Source of the DNA: Basidiobolus meristosporus CBS 931.73
Lineage: Eukaryota > Fungi > Basidiobolomycota
NCBI GenBank assembly: GCA_002104905.1
Contig: MCFE01000076.1
Location: 118,643 to 182,642 of the forward strand
DNA: 64,000 nucleotides
Direction of reading: 5' to 3'
Both the position numbers and the translations under genes were made by a program. Every line of letters begins with the position of its first letter. The first letter of the stretch is position 1. Below are positions 11,955 to 64,000 of this stretch, piece after piece. The notes under the pieces are model-generated. The model saw only the letters and a list, made by a program, of their open reading frames with translations. It was not told the DNA's origin and did not search any database.

Positions 11955-14588
<2,634 letters not shown>

Positions 14589-14972: not shown

Positions 14973-17042
14973 ATGGCTAGCAAGCGCAAGTTTTCTCGGG
15001 ACTTGAGTGTAGAAAGCGGTGAAAAAGTCCATGGAGATCTACAGCTCCATGAAAGAAATGTATATAGGTATAAGCCGCCGAATTTCGAGCAACTGGCAAA
15101 AGGGTATCCAGAATTTGGAAAATAGTAAGAGAAGAGTTTTCCCCAAACCGACAGAACAGAGTAGTGGGCTGACTTCCTTCGTATTATCTAGTGTTACTGT
15201 CAATAAAGGGGTAGGGAGGATTAACTTTCACGATCCAAAAGCAGTCCGGTAATTCGTTTGCGTTGAAATGCTTGGCCGTTGCGTGACCTCTACTCACTCC
15301 ATTCATAGCCAGCTCGCCTACACACTGTTGAAAAAAGACTTTGATTTGGAAGTGGAATTCCCACTAGATAGATTGTGTCCCATGGTAAGAAACGAAGCCC
15401 CCAGCTGTTGTATCTTTGGAAGATAGTTGGCTTGAGGAGCCTGGTATATATTATTTTGTATGCTTGGACCTAATTTCTACCAAGATTCCCAATAGGTACT
15501 ATAGAATGCAACCTGACACCACAGTGAAGTACAACCGTGCCCTAATGGAGCTGTTGGTTTTGCAGACTAAATTACTTGCTCTGGATAGACGATCTATTGC
15601 AGTCAACCAAAATGGATCAAGAAGTCGTTCGAGGGATAGACATGTACGTGACGCCTGTACGCTGGAAACTTTCTACCCGCCAGACCAACCATGCTGACCA
15701 CGTTGCCGCACAGCGGGGTTGGCGCTTCCTGCGTTTATCCATTACTAGGGTGTCGTCTGAACAGAAATTGGCATTTCTTGGGAACAGGTAGGACTCGAAA
15801 CTGGCGCAGGCACGAAGATTGTAGAAACTAAGCAGGCTTTCGTCAGAAATCGATCCACGTTCATTCTCCTATGCCAAGGCGAATGTCGAGAGAAACGGGC
15901 TGTCAGATAGGATACAGCTATTCTTGAATCCCACCTCCAAAACGCTGCCATTGGATGAGGCTGACGGAGATGCAAGGTACGGCTTGGCGCTCCACGAGGT
16001 GCTTCGGCCCAACTGACCCTTTGTTTAGGTTTTCCTTTGCCATGTGTAATCCACCCTTCTACGAAAATTACGAGCAGGTTGAGGCAGGCATCAACACGAA
16101 AAAGCTGAAACCACGCGCGGTAAGCTCGTGTACCTATCTTCGGTGGAGGCTCGGCATCTTAGTCCTCCATATAGGTATGCACCGGTTCTTCGAACGAGTT
16201 GATTACCGAGGGCGGTGAGGCACAGTTCATTTCGACAATGATCTCCGAGAGCCTGGAGCTACTGGACCGAGTAAGGTATCGCGGGTAGGATTCTCTCATT
16301 CATCGCAACATAGATTGATCGCATCCTGTGTGTGCAGCTGGTACACGACGATGGTGGGGCGTAAGGAAACCTTGGATGTCGTGGTTGCCAAACTCAAAAG
16401 CTCCAAGGTAGCTTGGTTCCTGATTTAGAGCCACTTCTTAACACTTACACCTTGCAAATACAGATCAACAACTATGCCATTACCGAGTTCTGCCAAGGAG
16501 TTACAAGACGCTGGGGATTGGCCTGGTCTTTCATGGATCAAAGGCTTAGCAAGGTCGATATGGGATGCATGGATGCTAAATCCAGTCGCGTGGTACTAAA
16601 TTCCCTTCGTTAGGAGATCGCCCAGCCAACATCAAAGCGCCTAAAGAAATTAGCACCGCCCACTACCCAATTCTGCCACACGTATCCACTAGTCCCAATC
16701 GTCTGCCGTAGCTTCCTCAAGGAGCTGATGGACGAACTGCAAGTAGAGTATAGTGCTGACGATGAGACCAAGACCCTTAGCGGTCTGACACGAGTCAATA
16801 CTTGGAGTCGATCAGCCAGACGTCTTCGTCAAAGGGGCGAATTGATGCCGGTAGCGACGGAAAACATTTTGTTCGAGTTCGAGAGCAAAGTCGACCCAGG
16901 GGAAAAGCCAGGAACTGCCTGTGTCATATTCACGTGGGTTAGGGGAGAGAGTAGAGACCTGTTCGAGTCCTTTCATAGCCACATCAAGAAGCGTATAGAA
17001 ACATACACCAATGGGTTGTCTGTAGAGCGCCAAGATAAATAA
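14973..17042 (+). CDS. METTL16: METTL16/RlmF-like RNA m6A methyltransferase (U6 snRNA methyltransferase family; multi-exon incl. 11-nt micro-exon)
   Basis: LCPMIPNRLNY, GIDIGVGASCVYPLLG, MCNPPFY, TEGGE, WYTTMVG, QGVTRRWGLAWSF motifs after splicing. Confidence 0.9.
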
Positions 17043-55898: not shown

Positions 55899-56822
55899 AT
55901 GATACTCTGTGATTTCATACAAGTAGTTCTTTGCCTGCTTTGTTTCCGGACGTTGGCCGTTGCTCATATGGAAATGGTTCAGCCACCACCGCGCCATTCA
56001 CGCTATAATCCTACATGGTCAGCAGAGCCGGATTATAATATGGTGAGCCCGTTGAGTGTCTATCCCTGTAAAGGATATGGAAAAGGGGGAGTTGTTCAGA
56101 CCGTAAAAGCAGGCGACTCAGTTCAGGTGCAAATTAGTGGTAGTGCTCCTCATGGTGGAGGGCATTGCCAATTTGCTCTCTCATACGATGAGGGCAAGAC
56201 CTTTGCTGTATTAGAAACAATTTACAGCGATTGTCTTTTTCCGAGCACCAATTATTCCGTGGGTATCCCGGTTTCTGCTGGTTCCAGCAAAAACGCCATC
56301 TTTGCCTGGGCATGGATTAACAAAATCGGTAATCGCGAATATTACATGAACTGCGCGGACTTGGAGATTCAGGGAACCGATAATGGCCATGTTGTAGGAC
56401 CAAAGTTGCTAGTAGCAAACCTTCCAGGATACCCTACCATACCAGAGTTTCTTGGCGACAAGTCCTATGATGGTAGAGATTTGCTAGAAGCTCGCCCAAT
56501 CATCACTATTCGTCCAATGAACGATGTGCCTACATCTAACTTAAATACCACATCAGCATCCACACCTGCGAATACACCGCCCACGTCTAGCACATCGTCA
56601 ATCAGTTTCCCGACCTCGACTACAAGCAAGATAAGCACGACCACAACTTCACCAATATCAAAAAATAGACGTTGCGAAGGCTCCTTAGCATGGAGTGCCA
56701 TAGTTGCATATAGTGGCTCCCGGAAGGTTACTTATGAGGGGCATCTATGGCAAGCCAAATGGTGGAATCAAAATGAGTCACCAAAAGAGAGTGGCGTATG
56801 GATTGACTTAGGCTCTTGCTAG
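55899..56822 (+). CDS. Secreted AA11-type lytic polysaccharide monooxygenase with S/T linker and C-terminal CBM5/12 chitin-binding module
   Basis: Signal peptide ends AVA-H (His at 55965-55967); HMEM..PPPR, APHGGGHCQFALSYD, FAWAWINKIGNREYYMNCAD; C-terminal AW...AY....VTYEGHLWQAKWW. Confidence 0.85.
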   Translation: MILCDFIQVVLCLLCFRTLAVAHMEMVQPPPRHSRYNPTWSAEPDYNMVSPLSVYPCKGYGKGGVVQTVKAGDSVQVQISGSAPHGGGHCQFALSYDEGKTFAVLETIYSDCLFPSTNYSVGIPVSAGSSKNAIFAWAWINKIGNREYYMNCADLEIQGTDNGHVVGPKLLVANLPGYPTIPEFLGDKSYDGRDLLEARPIITIRPMNDVPTSNLNTTSASTPANTPPTSSTSSISFPTSTTSKISTTTTSPISKNRRCEGSLAWSAIVAYSGSRKVTYEGHLWQAKWWNQNESPKESGVWIDLGSC

Positions 56823-57278
56823 GTTTCTTGTTAGTTCATGTTATTTTTTAATAAAGCAAAACCACAATACTTCATTGTTAGTTTAAAGCAAAAATGAGGG
56901 GAATTATACTGCCATGGAGGTGCATATGAGCCAAAGGCACAACATGGAACACTCATTTGTGTTATAAGTTATCCATTTGCACCCAAATATTTGCATTGAA
57001 TGATATATCTTCAGTTTTTCCATCAATTCTTGTAATTTGCACAAATGCTATAGGATTTCTTCTATGCTAAGTGCATTAATCTTGTGCAAGCTGGATGGCA
57101 CAAATTTTTTAAAGCTTAGCTTATTATGCAGAATGCTTCTCTCCATTGAATTTGTATATAATACCAAATTATATGTTTGCTATTGGGCATTATTTTAGTC
57201 TCAAGTAGGCTAATTATTTAACAAAGGGCCTGATCTCTTAGGGTGTAGATTTTATAGTAAGATTTCAAAAAGGTTGGA

Positions 57279-57305
57279 GGGTTAGGGGGGGAGACAGTTA
57301 CCAAC
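57279..57305 (-). mobile_element. 27-nt 5'-truncated stub of the LINE 3' terminus (innermost array unit)
   Basis: GGGTTAGGGGGGGAGACAGTTACCAAC matches the termini at 58272 and 63737. Confidence 0.75.
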
Positions 57306-58265
57306 TTAGGGGAGGGAAAGTCACCAAGGTAGGTGAAATCCTTATTTGATTTCAGACAAGTCTAACTACAAATAAGGAAGCCAGCTGGGAATAGAAGATT
57401 CCCAAAGTAAACACTAAGATGAATATGAATAAATCTAAGCCAAAGTTAAGGCAGTATACCAGAGTACACTGGAGTTCAGGTTCATGGGGGAGTGAAGTAG
57501 ATAAGCTTGAGAGATGTAATAATCTTTTAAGAAGTGGGTAACAGCAGGTGAAGGGGAGTTTTTGATAAGTGAGGTGAATCTTGAGAGCAGAGATTCCTCT
57601 AATGAGAAGGTCTTGTAAACTGGAGAATCAGGAAACTCTTTAAAGGCATGGTCAGTAGGTTCCCAGTAAAACTGGTCAGAGACATTTTGAGAGAATTGTT
57701 TGGCAATACTTTTGTCAAGTACTACCTCCAGAGTGTGATGGTTGATAAATCTTATGTTAACAATCTTGGATAAGTTGTAGCCTTGTTGCTTGAGATACAT
57801 CCTATGCTCAGATATGGGAATAAACTCCACATTTGCAAAGTAGCAGACAGCCCAGTCAGTAGCAGGAGGCAAATCAGAGGTGGCAGGAAGCTTTCTTTTA
57901 GTCTTGGGAGGGGCAGCAGGATGTCTTGAGGAAGCAGGATTAGACTTTTTGACAGCTTCAGAATAGGAAGAGTGAGCAGAAGCAGATGATTCTTGGGGAG
58001 TCTTGTTGGCAGGAAGAGTTGGCATAGGGACAATTGATTCTTGCAGATCAGAGAAGGCAGAAAACAGCTTTTGAACTTGTTTCTTGAGTAGAGCATTTTC
58101 AGCTTCAACAAGTGCAAGCCTTTCCTCAAGGAAAGAAATCTCTAGGGAATGGAGTGAAGGCATAAGAAACAAGAAGAAGAGGGTTGGATAGGGTGGGTGG
58201 GTGGGAAAGTTTGCAGGGAGAAGAGAAGGAAGGAATGAATATTCCAGAAGTCAGAATTTATAGAT
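57306..58265 (-). mobile_element. Non-autonomous Gag-only telomeric retroelement (about 1 kb)
   Basis: Own 5' leader, one ORF homologous to LINE ORF1, 3' UTR ending in the shared terminal module; no RT. Confidence 0.8.
57435..58163 (-). CDS. Gag/ORF1-like protein (coiled coil plus RRM-like domain) of the Gag-only element
   Basis: LPPATDWAVCYFANVEFIPISEHRMYLK...LSKIVNI...LEVVLDKSIA aligns by eye to LINE ORF1 LPPASTWTVVYLKQVPWTPISNIRKALK...LSRIVNL...LEVILDQNIA. Confidence 0.85.
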   Translation of the reverse strand: MPSLHSLEISFLEERLALVEAENALLKKQVQKLFSAFSDLQESIVPMPTLPANKTPQESSASAHSSYSEAVKKSNPASSRHPAAPPKTKRKLPATSDLPPATDWAVCYFANVEFIPISEHRMYLKQQGYNLSKIVNIRFINHHTLEVVLDKSIAKQFSQNVSDQFYWEPTDHAFKEFPDSPVYKTFSLEESLLSRFTSLIKNSPSPAVTHFLKDYYISQAYLLHSPMNLNSSVLWYTALTLA

Positions 58266-58338
58266 GGGCTAGGGTTAGGGGGGGAGACAATTACCAACAG
58301 GTGAAATCTTTATTTCAGTTGAAACAAAGAAGCCAGCA

Positions 58339-61107
58339 CTACTGTTGTAGCTTTGATACAAGAGTGTGTAGCTGAGGGGAACTTGTAGGTAAGTTAATAA
58401 GAAGTGATGATAGTTCTTGAGTGCTCAAGACACTGTTCAGTGGGAAGGGGGGTAGCAAGAGAGGTAAGAATGACTTGTGAACAACATTAATGAGGGGAAT
58501 GTGATAAGGATTGATATTCATCATAAAGGGAGTGTGCTGCTGCAGATATTGCTGCCAAAGGTCTGTCAAGTACTTCAGGTAGGCCAGCTTGGGTTTTTCT
58601 GACTGCAGAATAAATTCTGCAAACTTCTTGACTTCAGGATCTCCAAGTATAGTTCTCCAGCAGGAGCCAGGTGTTGTGTGGTGTGTTCTCTTCCAGGCCT
58701 TAATCAGTGGGTTGTTGCAGTGGTGAAGTCTGAGATATAATCTGGTTCTAAGGTAGAGAAGTCTGATCTTATAGGGCATAAACCCAAAAGCACCAAGAAT
58801 AGCATGTCTGTAGGGGCATTCAGGCAAATGAGGCACCAAGGAGGTAATGCACCATACTGCAAACTTGTCAAGCTTAGTGCAGTCTCTAGAAGTAAGAGAG
58901 AGAAGTGGTAAGCCAAATTCCAGTACAGGGAAGACAAACTGCTTGAGTAGAAGAAGGCAGCTGGGAGCTGAAGTTGTAGGAGGAGTAACAGCCAGTAGCT
59001 TGTGGAGTGCCTGTCTTGCCAGGATAATTCTCTTCTTCAGGTGTGCTCCAGAGTCTAGTCCAGTAGGAAGGAAAGGAAAGCCAAGATATGTAGCAGAAAC
59101 CTGAGCAGGTAGAGTGGAGTTCTCTAAGGTGATGGGAGAGCCCAAAGGTACTGTCTTTGCAATGGAAAGCTGGAGATTATTCTTCTGCAGATACTGGTGG
59201 ATGGTCTGGGAGTCTTGTTGCACATTGGAGGAGGATATTCTGATGTCATCAGCAAAGAGAGTAACCAGGCAGTCAGCTGAGAGTCATGGGAAATCATTCA
59301 GGAAGATGGCAAACAGTATAGGACCAAGCACAGAGCCTTGAACCACTCCATTAGGAACTGAGAACACAGCTGATTGCTCACTTGGGTGCAGAATTCTTGC
59401 TTGTGGATCCAGAAACAGGGACCTGACAAGGAGGGTGAGAGAGGTACTGGAGAAGCATTGCAACTTGGACCAAAGCAGATTTCTGTCAACTGAATCAAAG
59501 GCCTTAGTAATATCAAACAGAACTGAGGGATACTTACACTGGAGAGAGTGATCTTGGCTAAGTATGACTGCATATTCCAAGGAGAGGCCAGGAACAAAGC
59601 CAAACTGTGCAGGATGAAACTTGAGGGAGTCAGAGTAGAGCTCCTGAGCAAGCAGAAGCTCAAACACCTTTCTGCAGGTGGGCAGCAGAGATATTGGCCT
59701 GTAGGAGCTAGGATCCAGGTGCTTTCTGTTACCCTTGTACAGTGGCAGAACATTTGCAATGGACCATTCCTCAGGAGTAGAAAGCTGGGCTGAGCATTGC
59801 TGAAACAGTGGAAGCAGAAGTGCAGACATGGCCTTGGTACTAGTCTTCAGAAGCTCATAGGAGATTGTGTCCACACCTGGAGCAGTAGAGTTGGGAAGCC
59901 TCTTGAGCACATTATGGATTCTCCTTTGATCAAGTGCAAGTGGGATGGGCAGAGTCTTGAAGTCAGGATGAAAGCCAGGAGTTGAGTACTGCTTTGTAGA
60001 GAAGAAGATGTTAGCCAGCTGTTCTGTTGAAGGTAACTTCCTGGAAGAGGGCCTCATTGCCCTGTAGAGTCTTGATACTGTTCTTGTTATAGAGTTGGAA
60101 GATTGCAGAGGCAAGGAACTCATAATATGATCCCAGAGCTGAGTATGCAGAGTGTGGTGAATTGCCTTGGAGTGGTGTATTGCTGTCAGGAGGAGTTTCT
60201 CTGTTTTTGGGTTAGGGAAACTCAGGTAGCTTTGTTGCAGGGCTGAAACAATGGATTCCCATTTTCTTGAGGTAACAGCAGTAGTCTTGCATGGCAGTGA
60301 GAGGGAGGCAGACACCAGAATCAGATGCTTCACAAAGAGCCAGGCATAGTTGAGATCATCTGGCAGAGAAAGTAGCAAACTGGCAAGCTTCAAGTAGTTC
60401 CCAAAGTCTTTCTTCTGATTCTTGGTAGCTTTGTGGGTGAGCACAGTAAGTTTTGGCAGCTTCTTCTTCACAACTGGTTGCATAGAAAGGGACCAGGCTG
60501 GGTGGTCAGAGGCTCTCAAGGATCCTAGCTCAGCTCCAGAGAATTGCTTAACTTCATCCACAAAGTAGAGGGCAGCAGCAGAAGGGCAGATCCAGTCAAC
60601 ACATCTTTTCTCAGATTGAGCACCTAGTGCTAGCAGATGGCTTTCTCTCAGGAAGTTCAGTAGGAATGTAGACCTTGGCTTCATTCTTGCAGTCAGAGTA
60701 GTCTTTTTCTCAGGATGGGGAATGTTGAGATCTCCAAGCAAGATAATAGGTGTTGATATAGATTGCTGGTATTGCTGAACTTTCTGGCATATAACTTGCA
60801 CTTCCTGAAGGGCAAGACTTGGAGGCAGATAGCAGAGCACCAGACTGATAGTTGGCAACTGGAGAGCAGCACAGTAAGGGGAGTAAAGAGGAACACAGAG
60901 CTGAGGAGTATTGATGGTAGAAGAGATGAAGCAGATAGAGGAGGTATTCTTTGTTCTAGGAGTAGAAAAGCAATATAGATTAGTCAAAAGTATAGAGGGT
61001 AGCTGAACATCAATCAAACACAGGAGGGAAAATCTTGAAAGAAGTCTCTCTAGAGTTGGTCTTGATGGCTGTATGCTGTTGCAGTTAAGCAACAGAACTT
61101 CAGGTAG
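58339..61107 (-). CDS. LINE ORF2: APE endonuclease + reverse transcriptase, no AUG before the endonuclease, one internal in-frame TGA at 59284-59286
   Basis: APE: LLNCN, CYLPP, LGDLN, VDWI, SDH; RT: APGVD, YRPISLL, QFGF, FDITKAFDSV, GVVQGSVLGP, FADD (59245-59256), YLGF. Confidence 0.93.
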
Positions 61108-62616
61108 TCAGGCAGAGGTTGTAGCTTCTTCAGAGGCAGCATTAACTATGTGACCTGCAGAGTCCCAGAGCTCTTCAAATGGTGCATCACTTAAGTCAGC
61201 AAGGAGGGAAATGGCATGGTTCTTGAGGAAGTATGCCACATCATAGGAGGGGGCTTGTCTCTTGATGGCAGCAAAGAAAGACAGAATGGCAACATGGGCT
61301 GGAGGCTTGTTGAACAGTAGAGAGTCAGAGGATTCAGATTCTTCAGGCACTATCTTGAAGTCAGTTTTCAGCCAGTTAAGGTTCTTCTCCACAAAGGCAA
61401 CAAATGGGTCAGCAATGTTTTGGTCTAGGATAACCTCCAGAATCTTCCCTTTTCTCCAGGCCAGGTTGACAATTCTTGAGAGCTGAATATTGCATGCCTT
61501 GAGTGCTTTCCTGATGTTGGAAATGGGAGTCCAGGGAACTTGCTTCAAGTACACCACAGTCCAGGTAGAAGCTGGTGGTAGGTTTGCTGGGGGCTTGTAA
61601 GTCCTTCTGTGTGGCAATGGAGCTGCAGTAGTCAGATTGGAGTCCACATTCTCAGTAGAGGGTTTTCTTGATGTGTCTTGCTGAATGGTACTGGAGCTGG
61701 ATGTGTTGATAATTCTTGCTAGAACCTTGCCTGCATAAGTCTGAGGTATAGCTGAGGTGACTGTAGAGGTGGTGGCAGCTGGTGCAGGTGGAGAGGCAGA
61801 AACTGAAGCAGGAACTGAGGTCACCTGGGAGAAGGCAGTAGAAGCAGGTTTTCTGGGAGGAACAGAGTTCACTATCCAGTTGTTCTGTAAAACACTGGAG
61901 TAGCTTTTCTGTGGAACAGGATCTTGCTCTTGAACAGGAACAGAAGCAGCAGGCTGGGGCTGAGCAGTAGTGGTAAGGCAGTGGCACTCCAAGGAAGCTT
62001 TTTGCAAGGCATCTCTGGCAGTTTTCAGGGCAGTATTGGCTTCATTCTTGAGCTTCTTGCATTGGGCATCCAGTCTCTTGTTTTCAATAGCCAGGGCAGT
62101 ATTGGCAGCCTCTAAATCAGCAATTCTCTTCTCAATTGCAAGGAATCTCTGAAGAAATGCATCAGTAGAAGTGCTGGCATCTGGGAGAGCAGTGGCAGGA
62201 ATAGAGTCCATTGACAGTGGGCTTCTTGGAGGCAAGGAAAGTGGACTGGCAGATTCAGGCACAAAAGGAGATATCCTGGCAGGAGGAGAAGGAGTATCCA
62301 AGGCAGTAACAGAGGCAATTCTTGTTGGTGAAGCAGCAGCAGGGGAGGCAAGCCTGTTCAGAAACTGGGCAGGAGAGAGTGCTTGAGGAGAGGGAGTCTT
62401 CAGCTTGCCAAGCATGTCTTCCATCAGAGTGATACCAATATTCCTGGTGCATTTGCAGAGAAAAGTAAGCTTCCTGAGTCTGCCAGCTCTTCCATTCCTT
62501 CTGATAGTTCCTTTGTTTCCACAGTTGGGGCAAGAAATCTTCTTGATAGACTTGTCAAAGCAATCAAGAACCTTCCTTTCAGGTGTAGTGGGCTCCTGTT
62601 GAGGTTTTGGTGGCAT
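61108..62616 (-). CDS. LINE ORF1 (Gag-like): N-terminal CPNC...CKC zinc-ribbon-like motif, Ser/Pro-rich linker, coiled coil, RRM-like domain
   Basis: Uninterrupted ORF from ATG 62616 to TGA 61108-61110 directly upstream of and in frame with ORF2. Confidence 0.88.
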   Translation of the reverse strand: MPPKPQQEPTTPERKVLDCFDKSIKKISCPNCGNKGTIRRNGRAGRLRKLTFLCKCTRNIGITLMEDMLGKLKTPSPQALSPAQFLNRLASPAAASPTRIASVTALDTPSPPARISPFVPESASPLSLPPRSPLSMDSIPATALPDASTSTDAFLQRFLAIEKRIADLEAANTALAIENKRLDAQCKKLKNEANTALKTARDALQKASLECHCLTTTAQPQPAASVPVQEQDPVPQKSYSSVLQNNWIVNSVPPRKPASTAFSQVTSVPASVSASPPAPAATTSTVTSAIPQTYAGKVLARIINTSSSSTIQQDTSRKPSTENVDSNLTTAAPLPHRRTYKPPANLPPASTWTVVYLKQVPWTPISNIRKALKACNIQLSRIVNLAWRKGKILEVILDQNIADPFVAFVEKNLNWLKTDFKIVPEESESSDSLLFNKPPAHVAILSFFAAIKRQAPSYDVAYFLKNHAISLLADLSDAPFEELWDSAGHIVNAASEEATTSA

Positions 62617-62685
62617 ATCCAGAGTTTCAGCTTCAAATTTCAATTTTTGAGATTTTTGGGTGATTTTTGATGGGCGGGATCAAAA

Positions 62686-62699
62686 TTAGGGTTAGGGTT
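62686..62699 (+). repeat. Internal telomeric repeats TTAGGGTTAGGGTT
   Basis: Read directly, 70 nt upstream of LINE ORF1. Confidence 0.95.
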
Positions 62700-62841
62700 G
62701 CGCGCTGTGACTGCTTTTTACGATCGCAAGGTCAGAACCTAGGAAAAAATAAAAATAGTTAGTAAAGGTGATTTAATGGATGGATGGATGGATTCGGAGT
62801 CAGATTCAATCAAAAAATCAAATCGTTGACTAATTTAAAGA

Positions 62842-63371
62842 GGGTTAGGGGGGGAGGAAAGTCACCAAGTGGTGAAATCTTTATTTACTTATGACAAGTA
62901 TCTAAAGAAGCCAAGCTAATCTGATGTTATTCCTAGAAAGCTAGGTCTGAGAGATATATTCCTGGTAAGCCAGGTCTGAGAGTTGAGAAGCTGAGTGGTA
63001 CTATATTTCCTAGTTAGCTAGGTCTGAGAGTGGTTTCCTGGAAAGCCAGGCCTGAGAAGTGAGAATCTGAATATATCTGAGCTAAGTTATACTGGTTTGC
63101 GGTAGCTGAATTGTGGCCGGAATGGCCAGTAGACTGGGGGAGCTGAGATGTATTTCTGGGCAATCACTGGCCAAATTTACTAGGCAAATCTGGCCAAGTA
63201 GCATTTCAAGGATTTCAGCCAATCAGAGCCTTTACTTTGCCCGATGGTTGATCAAGCCATCTCCCAATGAGCACACATCAATTTATTGATCAAATTTTGT
63301 TGGATCCAGGATTTGAACCCACAACCATGGGTATGGAAGGGTTAGGGATAACCACAAGGCTAAGTGTTCTT
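62842..63371 (-). mobile_element. Full-length tRNA-derived SINE (about 530 bp) sharing the array 3' module
   Basis: Pol III A box 63362-63352 and B box 63319-63309 at tRNA spacing; hairpin-rich non-coding body; shared 3' terminus; second copy adjacent. Confidence 0.8.
63309..63362 (-). promoter_or_regulatory. Internal RNA polymerase III type-2 promoter (A box TAGCCTTGTGG, B box GGTTCAAATCC)
   Basis: Near-consensus boxes; T8-to-G53 distance of 44 nt as in tRNA genes; acceptor stem does not pair so not a functional tRNA. Confidence 0.75.
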
Positions 63372-63738
63372 GGTTAGGGGGAGGAAAGTCACCAAGTGGT
63401 GAAATCTTTATTTACTTATGACAAGTATCTAAAGAAGCCAAGTTAATCCGAAGTTATTCCTAGAAAGCTAGGTCTGAGAGATATCTTCCTGGTAAGCCAG
63501 GTCTGAGAGTTGAGAGGCTGAGTGGTACTATATTTCCTAGTTAGCTAGGTCTGAGAGAGGTTTCCTGGAAAGCCAGGCCTGAGAAGTAAGAATCTGAATA
63601 TATCTGAGCTAAGTTATACTGGTTTGCGGTAGCTGAATTATGGCCGGAATGGCCAGTAGACTGGGGGAACTGAGAGGAATTTCTGGGCGATCACTGGCCA
63701 AATTTACTAGGCAAATCTGGCCAATTAGCATTTCAAGG
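63372..63738 (-). mobile_element. 5'-truncated second copy of the SINE
   Basis: Near-identical to 62842-63211, lacks the tRNA-like head. Confidence 0.88.
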
Positions 63739-63830
63739 GTTAGGGGGGGAGACAGTCACCAACAGGTGAAATCTTTATTTCAGTTGAAACAAAGAAGCCA
63801 GCGCTACTGTTGTAGCTTTGATACAAGAGT
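63737..63830 (-). mobile_element. About 90-nt 5'-truncated copy of the LINE 3' end
   Basis: Matches 58272-58365 with three substitutions. Confidence 0.92.
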
Positions 63831-64000
63831 TAGGGTTAGGGTTAGGGTAGGGTTAGGGTTAGGGTTAGGGTTAGGGTTAGGGTTAGGGTTAGGGTTAGGG
63901 TTAGGGTTAGGGTTAGGGTTAGGGTTAGGGTTAGGGTTAGGGTTAGGGTTAGGGTTAGGGTTAGGGTTAGGGTTAGGGTTAGGTTAGGGTTAGGGTTAGG
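63830..64000 (+). repeat. Telomere (TTAGGG)n, G-strand running to the window end
   Basis: About 28 units read directly, with TAGGG and TTAGG variants; orientation expected for a right chromosome end. Confidence 0.99.

Follow-up and report, generated by a model that had tools for sequence, protein, structure and literature searches.

The last ~6.7 kb of a 64,000-nucleotide stretch of the Basidiobolus meristosporus CBS 931.73 genome (contig MCFE01000076.1, positions 118,643 to 182,642; hereafter the window, with all positions counted from its first letter) form a chromosome end made of stacked retroelements: units of a long interspersed nuclear element (LINE), of a Gag-only element and of a non-coding element resembling a short interspersed nuclear element (SINE-like unit), followed by telomere repeats. 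We consider it probable, at roughly 60%, that this array was built by a genus-restricted consortium of telomere-specialised LINE, Gag-only and SINE-like elements through target-primed reverse transcription (TPRT) from the telomeric G-strand. The observations behind this reading are the anatomy of the array, a 3' tail common to its units, their polarity, the recurrence of the arrangement at other chromosome ends and in another species, selection on the encoded proteins and a telomerase-type cap.

Telomere-dedicated retroelements are rare, and each independent case informs two questions: how telomerase could be replaced in Drosophila, and what relation it has to retroelements. Basidiobolus belongs to the Basidiobolomycota, an early-diverging fungal phylum, and is known for its very many small chromosomes.

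Architecture of the chromosome end

The window covers a right-hand chromosome end, its plus strand closing in telomere repeats with the G-strand outward. Positions 57279-63830 hold six retroelement units, all on the minus strand and arranged head-to-tail, with the 3' end proximal and the 5' end distal (Table 1). The cap at 63829-64000 comprises 29 copies of a 6-nt unit with 97% matches. A repeat search of the window recovered the LINE 3' end (58271-58365) again at 63736-63830 and the SINE-like sequence 62850-63149 again at 63377-63676, both at 97%, as well as a short tail motif at 57256-57305, 58249-58298 and 63714-63763. The motif GGTTAGGGG occurs six times in the window against 0.36 expected by chance; five of these occurrences are unit starts, and the sixth, at 16937, is isolated, with no tail core nearby. 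The 16-nt tail core GGTGAAATCTTTATTT occurs five times against 0.81 expected, always inside the array, and a search with it found no element copy or tail in the remaining 57 kb of the window.

The junctions of the array carry from 0 to about 1.5 telomere repeats, and at 57305/57306 not one telomeric base separates the LINE stub from the next tail. Target-site duplications are not visible at the array junctions. An initial annotation of this DNA had described six minus-strand units, their borders, their head-to-tail stacking with the 3' ends inward, a spacing of about one repeat, the lack of visible target-site duplications and a telomerase-type cap, and all of this is borne out by the sequence and the repeat search; the fungus that it supposed as host is B. 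meristosporus.

Table 1. Features of the terminal array, in window coordinates
Feature	Position	Strand	Basis
'Z' stub (probable), one TTAGGG + 34 nt	57239-57278	-	81% identity over 42 nt to L012 sequence distal to (CCCTAA)3, E 4e-4 in a small search
LINE 3' stub, 27 nt, tail only, terminating within the tail hairpin loop	57279-57305	-	matches tails 58249-58298 and 63714-63763
Gag-only element, 960 nt; 3' tail 57306-57350, open reading frame (ORF) 57435-58163	57306-58265	-	ORF and ORF1 homology
Full-length LINE, 4576 nt: 3' tail, ORF2, in-frame UGA, ORF1, 5' untranslated region (UTR)	58266-62841	-	
LINE 3' tail	58266-58320	-	alignment of 13 tails
ORF2 C-terminal part, reverse transcriptase (RT) from the FADD motif on; TAG stop 58339-58341	58339-59283	-	
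Copy-specific premature TGA within RT	59284-59286	-	sense codon in relatives and other copies
ORF2 N-terminal part: endonuclease (~60350-61107) and first two thirds of RT	59287-61107	-	
Conserved UGA (61108-61110) and downstream stem-loop (61073-61098)	61073-61110	-	
LINE ORF1, 503 aa	61111-62619	-	
LINE 5' UTR	62620-62841	-	
SINE-like non-coding element, full length, 530 nt	62842-63371	-	
Second SINE-like copy, 5'-truncated: 3' 366 nt, 97% identical	63372-63737	-	
LINE 3' stub, 93 nt, 97% identical to full LINE 3' end	63738-63830	-	
Telomere cap, (TTAGGG)29	63829-64000	+	Tandem Repeats Finder

A common 3' tail complementary to the telomeric G-strand

The LINE, Gag-only and SINE-like units have a ~45-nt 3' tail in common and no similarity upstream of it. 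We aligned 13 tails from at least four element types (LINEs, Gag-only elements, SINE-like units and unidentified fragments) found in the window and at seven loci, and the alignment upholds the 3' module that had been noted in all three unit types. Read on the sense strand, the tail consists of an AATAAA motif, a 4-5 bp CACC/GGTG hairpin, a C-run and TAACC(C); the invariant parts are AATAAAGATT, CACC, a loop of 4-6 nt, TGGTG, a short T-rich spacer, 5-7 C and TAA, usually with CC(C) after it. In the window LINE the hairpin arms lie at 58291-58295 and 58300-58304 and are followed by a C7 run and TAACC. Over its final 6-9 nt the sense strand is complementary to the telomeric G-strand. Hairpin pairing holds in 94% of the alignment cells; the core is invariant, so that covariation offers no proof of the hairpin.

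Both very short stubs, the 27-nt one at 57279-57305 and a 20-nt one at locus L009 (~641-660), stop at the tail hairpin. These two cases suggest that the RT may stall and switch template there.

Recurrence at other chromosome ends

The tail, the polarity and the stacking recur at two other contig ends of B. meristosporus, at two of Basidiobolus ranarum and on short contigs of further samples; the telomere association, proposed earlier for the window, is found at four further contig ends in two species. These loci were reached through their annotated proteins and not through their position, and comprise, with the window, five chromosome ends in all, not a genome-wide census. Because position played no part in the choice, it is meaningful that the 5' end points toward the contig end in every copy examined. 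The contigs of the relatives end in the shared tail, beyond which lies either another LINE's 5' end or a set of truncated units with tails of their own.

In four of the five ends the basal unit lacks a telomere tract, and the flanking bases have no common motif. At L012 (B. meristosporus) a LINE truncated at position 1160 is capped by (CCCTAA)3 and its tail stands directly on unique DNA. At L013 (B. meristosporus) the LINE is truncated at position 1144 and its tail adjoins ~5 degenerate telomere repeats and then unique DNA (14470-14515); this locus appears to be a former chromosome end that was internalised behind duplicated segments. The two B. ranarum contigs, L009 and L015, start with a Gag-only element whose tail lies on unique gene-bearing DNA, and at L009 the 20-nt stub of another tail is placed between the two.

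Beyond the L012 cap, 1.1 kb of sequence that we call 'Z' extends to the contig end. It (L012 1-1141) contains CpG, three tandem ~170-bp units and two GC-rich hairpins. Window positions 57245-57278 are similar to its first 34 nt, and it may represent either a subtelomeric repeat or a fourth terminal element. Given that a 34-nt stub in the window resembles sequence distal to the L012 fossil telomere, the array probably starts ~40 nt further in than the six units, although the similarity is weak; positions 57239-57278 would then be a seventh, most proximal unit, probably the 3' end of this fourth, 'Z' element type.

The family is narrowly distributed. A search of 5.8 billion clusters yielded only five close relatives of the RT-bearing protein (49-84% identity); below them, no match appears until 35%. 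The ORF1 protein gave 14 matches among 1.84 billion representatives, and all those with a species name are from Basidiobolus; a distant ORF1 relative, at L014, has neither the tail nor the loss of CpG described below. A metagenome scan with the tail pattern gave 0 matches, and one with an RT profile gave only distant LINEs without the tail and one unrelated locus with (CCCTAA)2.

The LINE encodes a predicted APE-type endonuclease and a LINE-type reverse transcriptase

The LINE is a single frame from the ATG at 62619 to the TAG at 58339, broken by two TGA codons. Its ORF1 contains a CxxC...CxC zinc-ribbon-like motif, a coiled coil and a conserved C-terminal domain. The model of this ORF1-type domain, which the Gag-only protein shares, has the order beta-alpha-beta-beta-alpha-beta plus helices (predicted local distance difference test, pLDDT, 79). 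Foldseek returned nothing significant for it; folds of the RNA recognition motif are among the weak matches, and such an identity is put forward here as a suggestion from the model.

The ORF2 RT is recognised by Pfam RVT_1 (1.6e-16) and has the FADD motif; its best solved relative is human L1 ORF2p (7e-14, with R2 at 0.06), and the nearest RTs outside the family are at most 35% identical. The endonuclease scored below threshold in Pfam (Exo_endo_phos_2, 7e-4) and a PDB sequence search with it gave no match. An AlphaFold (AF2) model built from 16 sequences (pLDDT 82) matched, in Foldseek, the apurinic/apyrimidinic endonuclease APE1 at 3e-10 and the L1 and TRAS1 retrotransposon endonucleases at ~1e-9, with 1wdu among the top matches; the domain is thus too diverged for sequence methods, and only structure comparison identified the APE fold. 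The domain retains the motifs N, GDxN, D and SDH and has a conserved D in place of the catalytic E. A domain of the APE-type endonuclease/exonuclease/phosphatase fold therefore precedes the RT, as predicted by homology and modelling, and the long unit is an APE-type LINE by these features, in agreement with the endonuclease and RT assigned to it at the outset. In the C-terminal 314 aa of ORF2 Pfam found only the end of RVT_1, and no feature of a restriction-enzyme-like endonuclease. The usual marks of LINEs, namely target-site duplications, an A-rich or simple-repeat 3' end and dispersed insertion sites, were not found, and the observed copies lie only at ends.

A conserved in-frame UGA and a private premature stop

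ORF1 and ORF2 are split by a single TGA in the same frame, in the context GCN-TGA-CTN, in all six lineages compared (window 61073-61110, L001 2112, L002 1449, L004 2669, L010 1666 and L011 905); the window has GCC-TGA-CTA. ORF1 ends in ...SA before TGA-CTN, the first endonuclease motif follows 4-5 codons after the TGA, and most lineages have no ATG ahead of that motif. A 7-10 bp stem-loop lies ~9 nt downstream of the TGA in five of the six lineages, with four pairs that change on both sides. The conserved UGA is probably a site of programmed read-through, yielding an ORF1-ORF2 fusion that would be unusual for a LINE.

The second TGA, at 59284-59286 between the GPILF and FADD motifs, is a sense codon in five relatives and in both other B. 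meristosporus copies. Since it is private to the window copy, the window's only full-length LINE is defective and cannot be an active source; the ORF2 of L012 is open at that position. The TGA-CTC context of the premature stop is also found around the conserved, presumed read-through stop in some relatives. An alternative genetic code in which TGA is sense was rejected, as the first TGA is conserved together with its context and the second is sense in every other copy; a host gene moreover gives a 100% protein match under the standard code.

Two non-autonomous riders

The Gag-only ORF (57435-58163) is intact and encodes 242 aa, with a coiled coil and the conserved ORF1 C-terminal domain and without endonuclease or RT. 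Over the C-terminal 142 aa the protein shares 36% identity with the corresponding part of the LINE ORF1 (E 7e-20). Homologues 32-48% identical exist in B. ranarum, including at contig ends. On this sequence comparison the unit is a separately evolving element with a diverged ORF1 homologue, not a recent deletion derivative, in keeping with its earlier description as a distinct partner.

The 530-nt SINE-like unit has no ORF. It had been labelled a tRNA-derived SINE, a label that we drop: ARAGORN found 0 tRNA genes in it at default settings and, once thresholds were relaxed, nothing but a spurious call, and Rfam cmscan found no tRNA or other known RNA at E values up to 10, so that a tRNA origin is not supported. 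What can be seen by eye are a box-A-like motif at 63352-63362 and a box-B-like motif at 63309-63319, TAGCCTTGTGG and GGTTCAAATCC, each 10/11 to the consensus and ~40 nt apart. The unit also carries four copies of a 21-nt motif (62932-63057, and 63459-63584 in the second copy). A 5-bp hairpin in this motif alternates between CCTAG/CTAGG and CCTGG/CCAGG, double changes that preserve pairing within one element.

The SINE-like tail is 90% identical over 42 nt to the tail of the window LINE and 93% to that of a second LINE lineage. The latter is found at L004 1-533, upstream of the main lineage, with the tail GGTGACTTTCC...; the window SINE-like and Gag-only tails resemble this tail at least as closely as they resemble that of the window LINE. 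We infer from the shared tail that the riders may be mobilised in trans. The proposal that one LINE RT serves both riders is plausible, but the rider tails fit the second lineage of L004 equally well or better, which means that the RT donor may be a LINE outside the window.

Selection and base composition

Comparison with L002 gave a ratio of non-synonymous to synonymous substitution (dN/dS) of 0.13 overall, with 0.24 for ORF1, 0.12 for the endonuclease and 0.09 for the RT; dS is high in this pair (1.1-1.6), which makes the values rough. Two B. meristosporus copies differ by 21 synonymous and 19 non-synonymous changes (dN/dS 0.29). ORF1, endonuclease and RT are thus under purifying selection, as judged from these substitution ratios.

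The LINE body and the Gag-only element (57306-62640) contain 0 CpG in 5.3 kb, an observed/expected ratio (o/e) of 0.00 against 0.77 in the rest of the window, and TpG is in excess on the sense strand. The only part of the LINE with CpG is its 5' UTR (o/e 1.3). The depletion is kept in the relatives (L001-L013 loci; o/e 0.00-0.10) down to 50% protein identity. Decay of the type caused by repeat-induced point mutation was rejected because the ORFs are constrained. The sense strand is also poor in G (~17% G vs 28% C), so that the outward strand of the array is G-rich, with a GC skew of +0.28. A G-rich end-directed strand has been reported for telomeric retroelements in general (PMC10088271).

How the array may have been built

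TPRT from the 3'-OH of a terminal G-strand is compatible with the polarity of the units, their truncation at the 5' end, the complementarity of the tail to the telomere and the renewed TTAGGG cap. In the scheme that we propose, the LINE protein would be made as an ORF1-ORF2 fusion by read-through of the conserved UGA and would recognise the tail both in cis and in trans. Through its last 6-9 nt, the RNA would pair with the telomeric G-strand, or rest on a bare 3' end, and reverse transcription would be primed from the terminal G-strand 3'-OH, leaving each addition with its 3' end in and its 5' end out. Incomplete copying, template switching at the hairpin or later erosion could produce the 5' truncations, and the added unit would then be extended by another element or re-capped by telomerase. 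As to the primer, we lean slightly toward a natural or uncapped chromosome end rather than an endonuclease nick. Priming of this kind is favoured by the junction without any telomeric base, and the four of five basal junctions that have neither a telomere tract nor a common flanking motif fit addition to bare ends.

Several points count against addition by G-strand-primed TPRT at chromosome ends. The endonuclease keeps its catalytic residues, save for the one E-to-D change, and is constrained like the RT, which would be unexpected if it had no role in integration. The only full-length LINE seen in the B. meristosporus genome has a premature stop. Some 12.8 kb, including locally duplicated DNA, now separate L013 from its contig end. 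Polyadenylation would be expected from the AAUAAA motif, but the array contains no copied A-tract. Covariation of the tail hairpin is minimal, with one pair changed on both sides and a score reached by 186/500 shuffles. The sample is five chromosome ends chosen by protein annotation, not a census. Finally, MoTeR arrays of Magnaporthe oryzae, which are thought to be endonuclease-mediated, also have spacers as short as half a repeat (PMC7367193), and short spacers accordingly do not discriminate between priming from an end and nicking.

Part of this evidence would suit endonuclease-dependent, site-specific insertion, which we regard as possible though well short of probable. Here the APE-type enzyme would nick the G-strand in telomere repeats or in an existing tail, the tail would anneal and TPRT would follow, and each new insertion at the base of the telomere tract would lengthen the array, as in TRAS/SART and as proposed for MoTeR. 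The fold and catalytic residues, the endonuclease dN/dS on par with that of the RT, the telomere-specific TRAS1 enzyme among the Foldseek matches and the half-repeat spacers of MoTeR can all be accommodated in this way, as can the junctions at L013 and L004, which carry 2-5 telomere repeats proximal to the tail. Harder to accommodate is that four of the five arrays begin on unique DNA, with neither a proximal telomere tract nor a common flanking motif, that one junction is devoid of telomeric bases, and that spacers are uniformly about 0-2 repeats long though the terminal tract has 29.

A subtelomeric repeat block that recombination or break-induced replication has spread between chromosome ends, with elements that are relics unable to transpose any longer, is an improbable reading of the array. 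Local segmental duplications do lie distal to the L013 LINE, L012 and L013 are truncated at a near-identical LINE position (1160 vs 1144) and the window LINE is defective, but each end has its own unit order, truncation points and basal flanks, synonymous changes are in excess between copies, whose identity is 97-99%, the ORFs are intact and constrained across lineages down to 50% protein identity, and the L012 ORF2 is open. Least credible of all is the passive accumulation of an ordinary LINE and SINE in gene-poor subtelomeres, or an assembly artefact: the window is seen in one assembly and the relatives' short-read contigs break at the elements, but the same tail-to-head junctions occur on independent contigs of two named species and further samples, the polarity is uniform, the tail is telomere-complementary, and the 57 kb of adjacent DNA contain no tail.

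Relation to known telomeric retroelements

Like HeT-A, TART and TAHRE of Drosophila, the Basidiobolus elements form terminal head-to-tail arrays in which the 3' end faces the centromere and 5' truncation varies, are attached to non-telomeric ends (broken ends in Drosophila), and combine APE-type LINEs with a Gag-only partner that borrows an RT. The junctions differ, being oligo(A) in Drosophila and a C-run plus TAACC tail here, and Drosophila has no telomerase repeats, in contrast to the (TTAGGG)29 cap, and no SINE-like third partner; the ORF1-UGA-ORF2 fusion frame belongs to the Basidiobolus elements only. A G-rich end-directed strand is found in both systems (PMC10088271).

The Penelope-like elements Athena (bdelloid rotifers) and Coprina (basidiomycetes) offer a parallel for the tail: as described in part by 10.1101/2021.04.23.441226, their 3' ends, which carry the telomere repeat in reverse complement, are able to pair with the G-overhang, and their stacked, 5'-truncated copies have short telomere spacers and coexist with telomerase. 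They differ in having a telomerase-like RT without endonuclease or ORF1, whereas the Basidiobolus LINE has a LINE-type RT that matches L1, an N-terminal APE domain and a separate ORF1.

Among fungi, MoTeR elements are always head-to-tail with their 5' ends nearest the chromosome end, their units are spaced by half a repeat to more than 20 TTAGGG repeats, the shorter spacers being like those described here, and MoTeR1 and MoTeR2 form an autonomous and non-autonomous pair with shared terminal sequences whose truncated copies are re-capped by telomerase (PMC7367193). FoTeR of Fusarium is likewise a fungal telomeric array with an autonomous and a non-autonomous partner (PMC12857005). The described fungal telomere LINEs (MoTeR, FoTeR, Cnl1) belong to a CRE-like clade with a restriction-like endonuclease (PMC7367193, PMC12857005). 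MoTeR, FoTeR and Cnl1 (of Cryptococcus) differ from the Basidiobolus LINE in that type of endonuclease, in lacking ORF1 and in their Dikarya hosts; MoTeR also has telomere-like variant repeats at its 5' end, and MoTeR2 has no Gag.

TRAS1 and SART1 of Bombyx mori (R1 clade) are, like the Basidiobolus LINE, telomere-dedicated APE LINEs that live alongside telomerase-type repeats, and the endonuclease fold of TRAS1 (1wdu) is comparable. They insert at a fixed site inside long TTAGG tracts, with poly(A) and with repeats on both sides, and have no riders; insertion of that kind was not seen in Basidiobolus, where four of five basal units stand on unique DNA and poly(A) is absent. The sharing of a tail resembles stringent LINE-SINE pairs such as eel UnaL2/UnaSINE1, in which a common 3' stem-loop is the presumed recognition site of the RT. 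Such pairs insert across the genome and have short simple repeats at their ends, whereas in Basidiobolus the tail ends in a telomere complement and all observed copies are terminal.

The initial annotation took the arrangement to be undescribed in fungi. As a general statement this is overstated, since MoTeR1/2 and FoTeR arrays were already known; a literature search returned nothing on telomeric elements of Basidiobolus, and as far as we found, the APE-type enzyme, the Gag-only and SINE-like riders and the telomere-complementary 3' tail, in an early-diverging fungus, are new. The array unites traits otherwise seen apart: an APE LINE with a Gag-only partner (Drosophila), a complementary tail (Athena), coexistence with fungal telomerase (MoTeR) and a SINE-like rider. 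Tentatively, and with considerable doubt, Basidiobolus could be regarded as an intermediate between telomerase-only and Drosophila-type telomeres, in which the LINE and its Gag-only and RNA-only riders would be added independently of the endonuclease, their telomere-complementary RNA tail pairing with the G-strand, and would heal and lengthen bare or critically short ends together with telomerase. As telomerase repeats are retained, the division of labour between two routes of end maintenance is directly testable in a culturable organism, and the conserved UGA read-through and the CpG-free, G-poor coding strand offer handles on how the host tolerates or uses the elements.

Further features of the elements and flanks

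The ORFs in the rest of the window are ordinary fungal genes, among them a 623-aa ORF with 100% identity to the glycogen branching enzyme of B. meristosporus CBS 931.73. CpG-free stretches also occur outside the recognised elements, at window 56796-57238 (440 nt proximal to the array), L013 1-2500 and L013 14496-16000; they may be older elements or reflect a general repeat-directed process, and the loss of CpG from the LINE and Gag-only element may accordingly be common to repeats of this genome.

The 5' terminus motif TCTTTWAAT is common to the window LINE and the relative at L010. In the 5' UTR of the window LINE, (TTAGGG)2 at 62686-62697 stands beside a CpG-rich patch; it is absent from the relatives' 5' UTRs inspected and may be a binding site for a telomere-repeat protein. 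LINE and Gag-only elements have in common a 5' motif, CCATCCATC followed by a TATA-like (A/T)TAAAT, at window 62765-62785 and 58245-58262, L010 58-73, and L015 44-59 and 146-161. Its form is CCATCCATCC...TAAAT in the 5' UTR of the window LINE and CCATCTATAAAT in that of the Gag-only element. At L015 a ~100-nt 5' segment bearing the CCATCCATC motif is tandemly duplicated.

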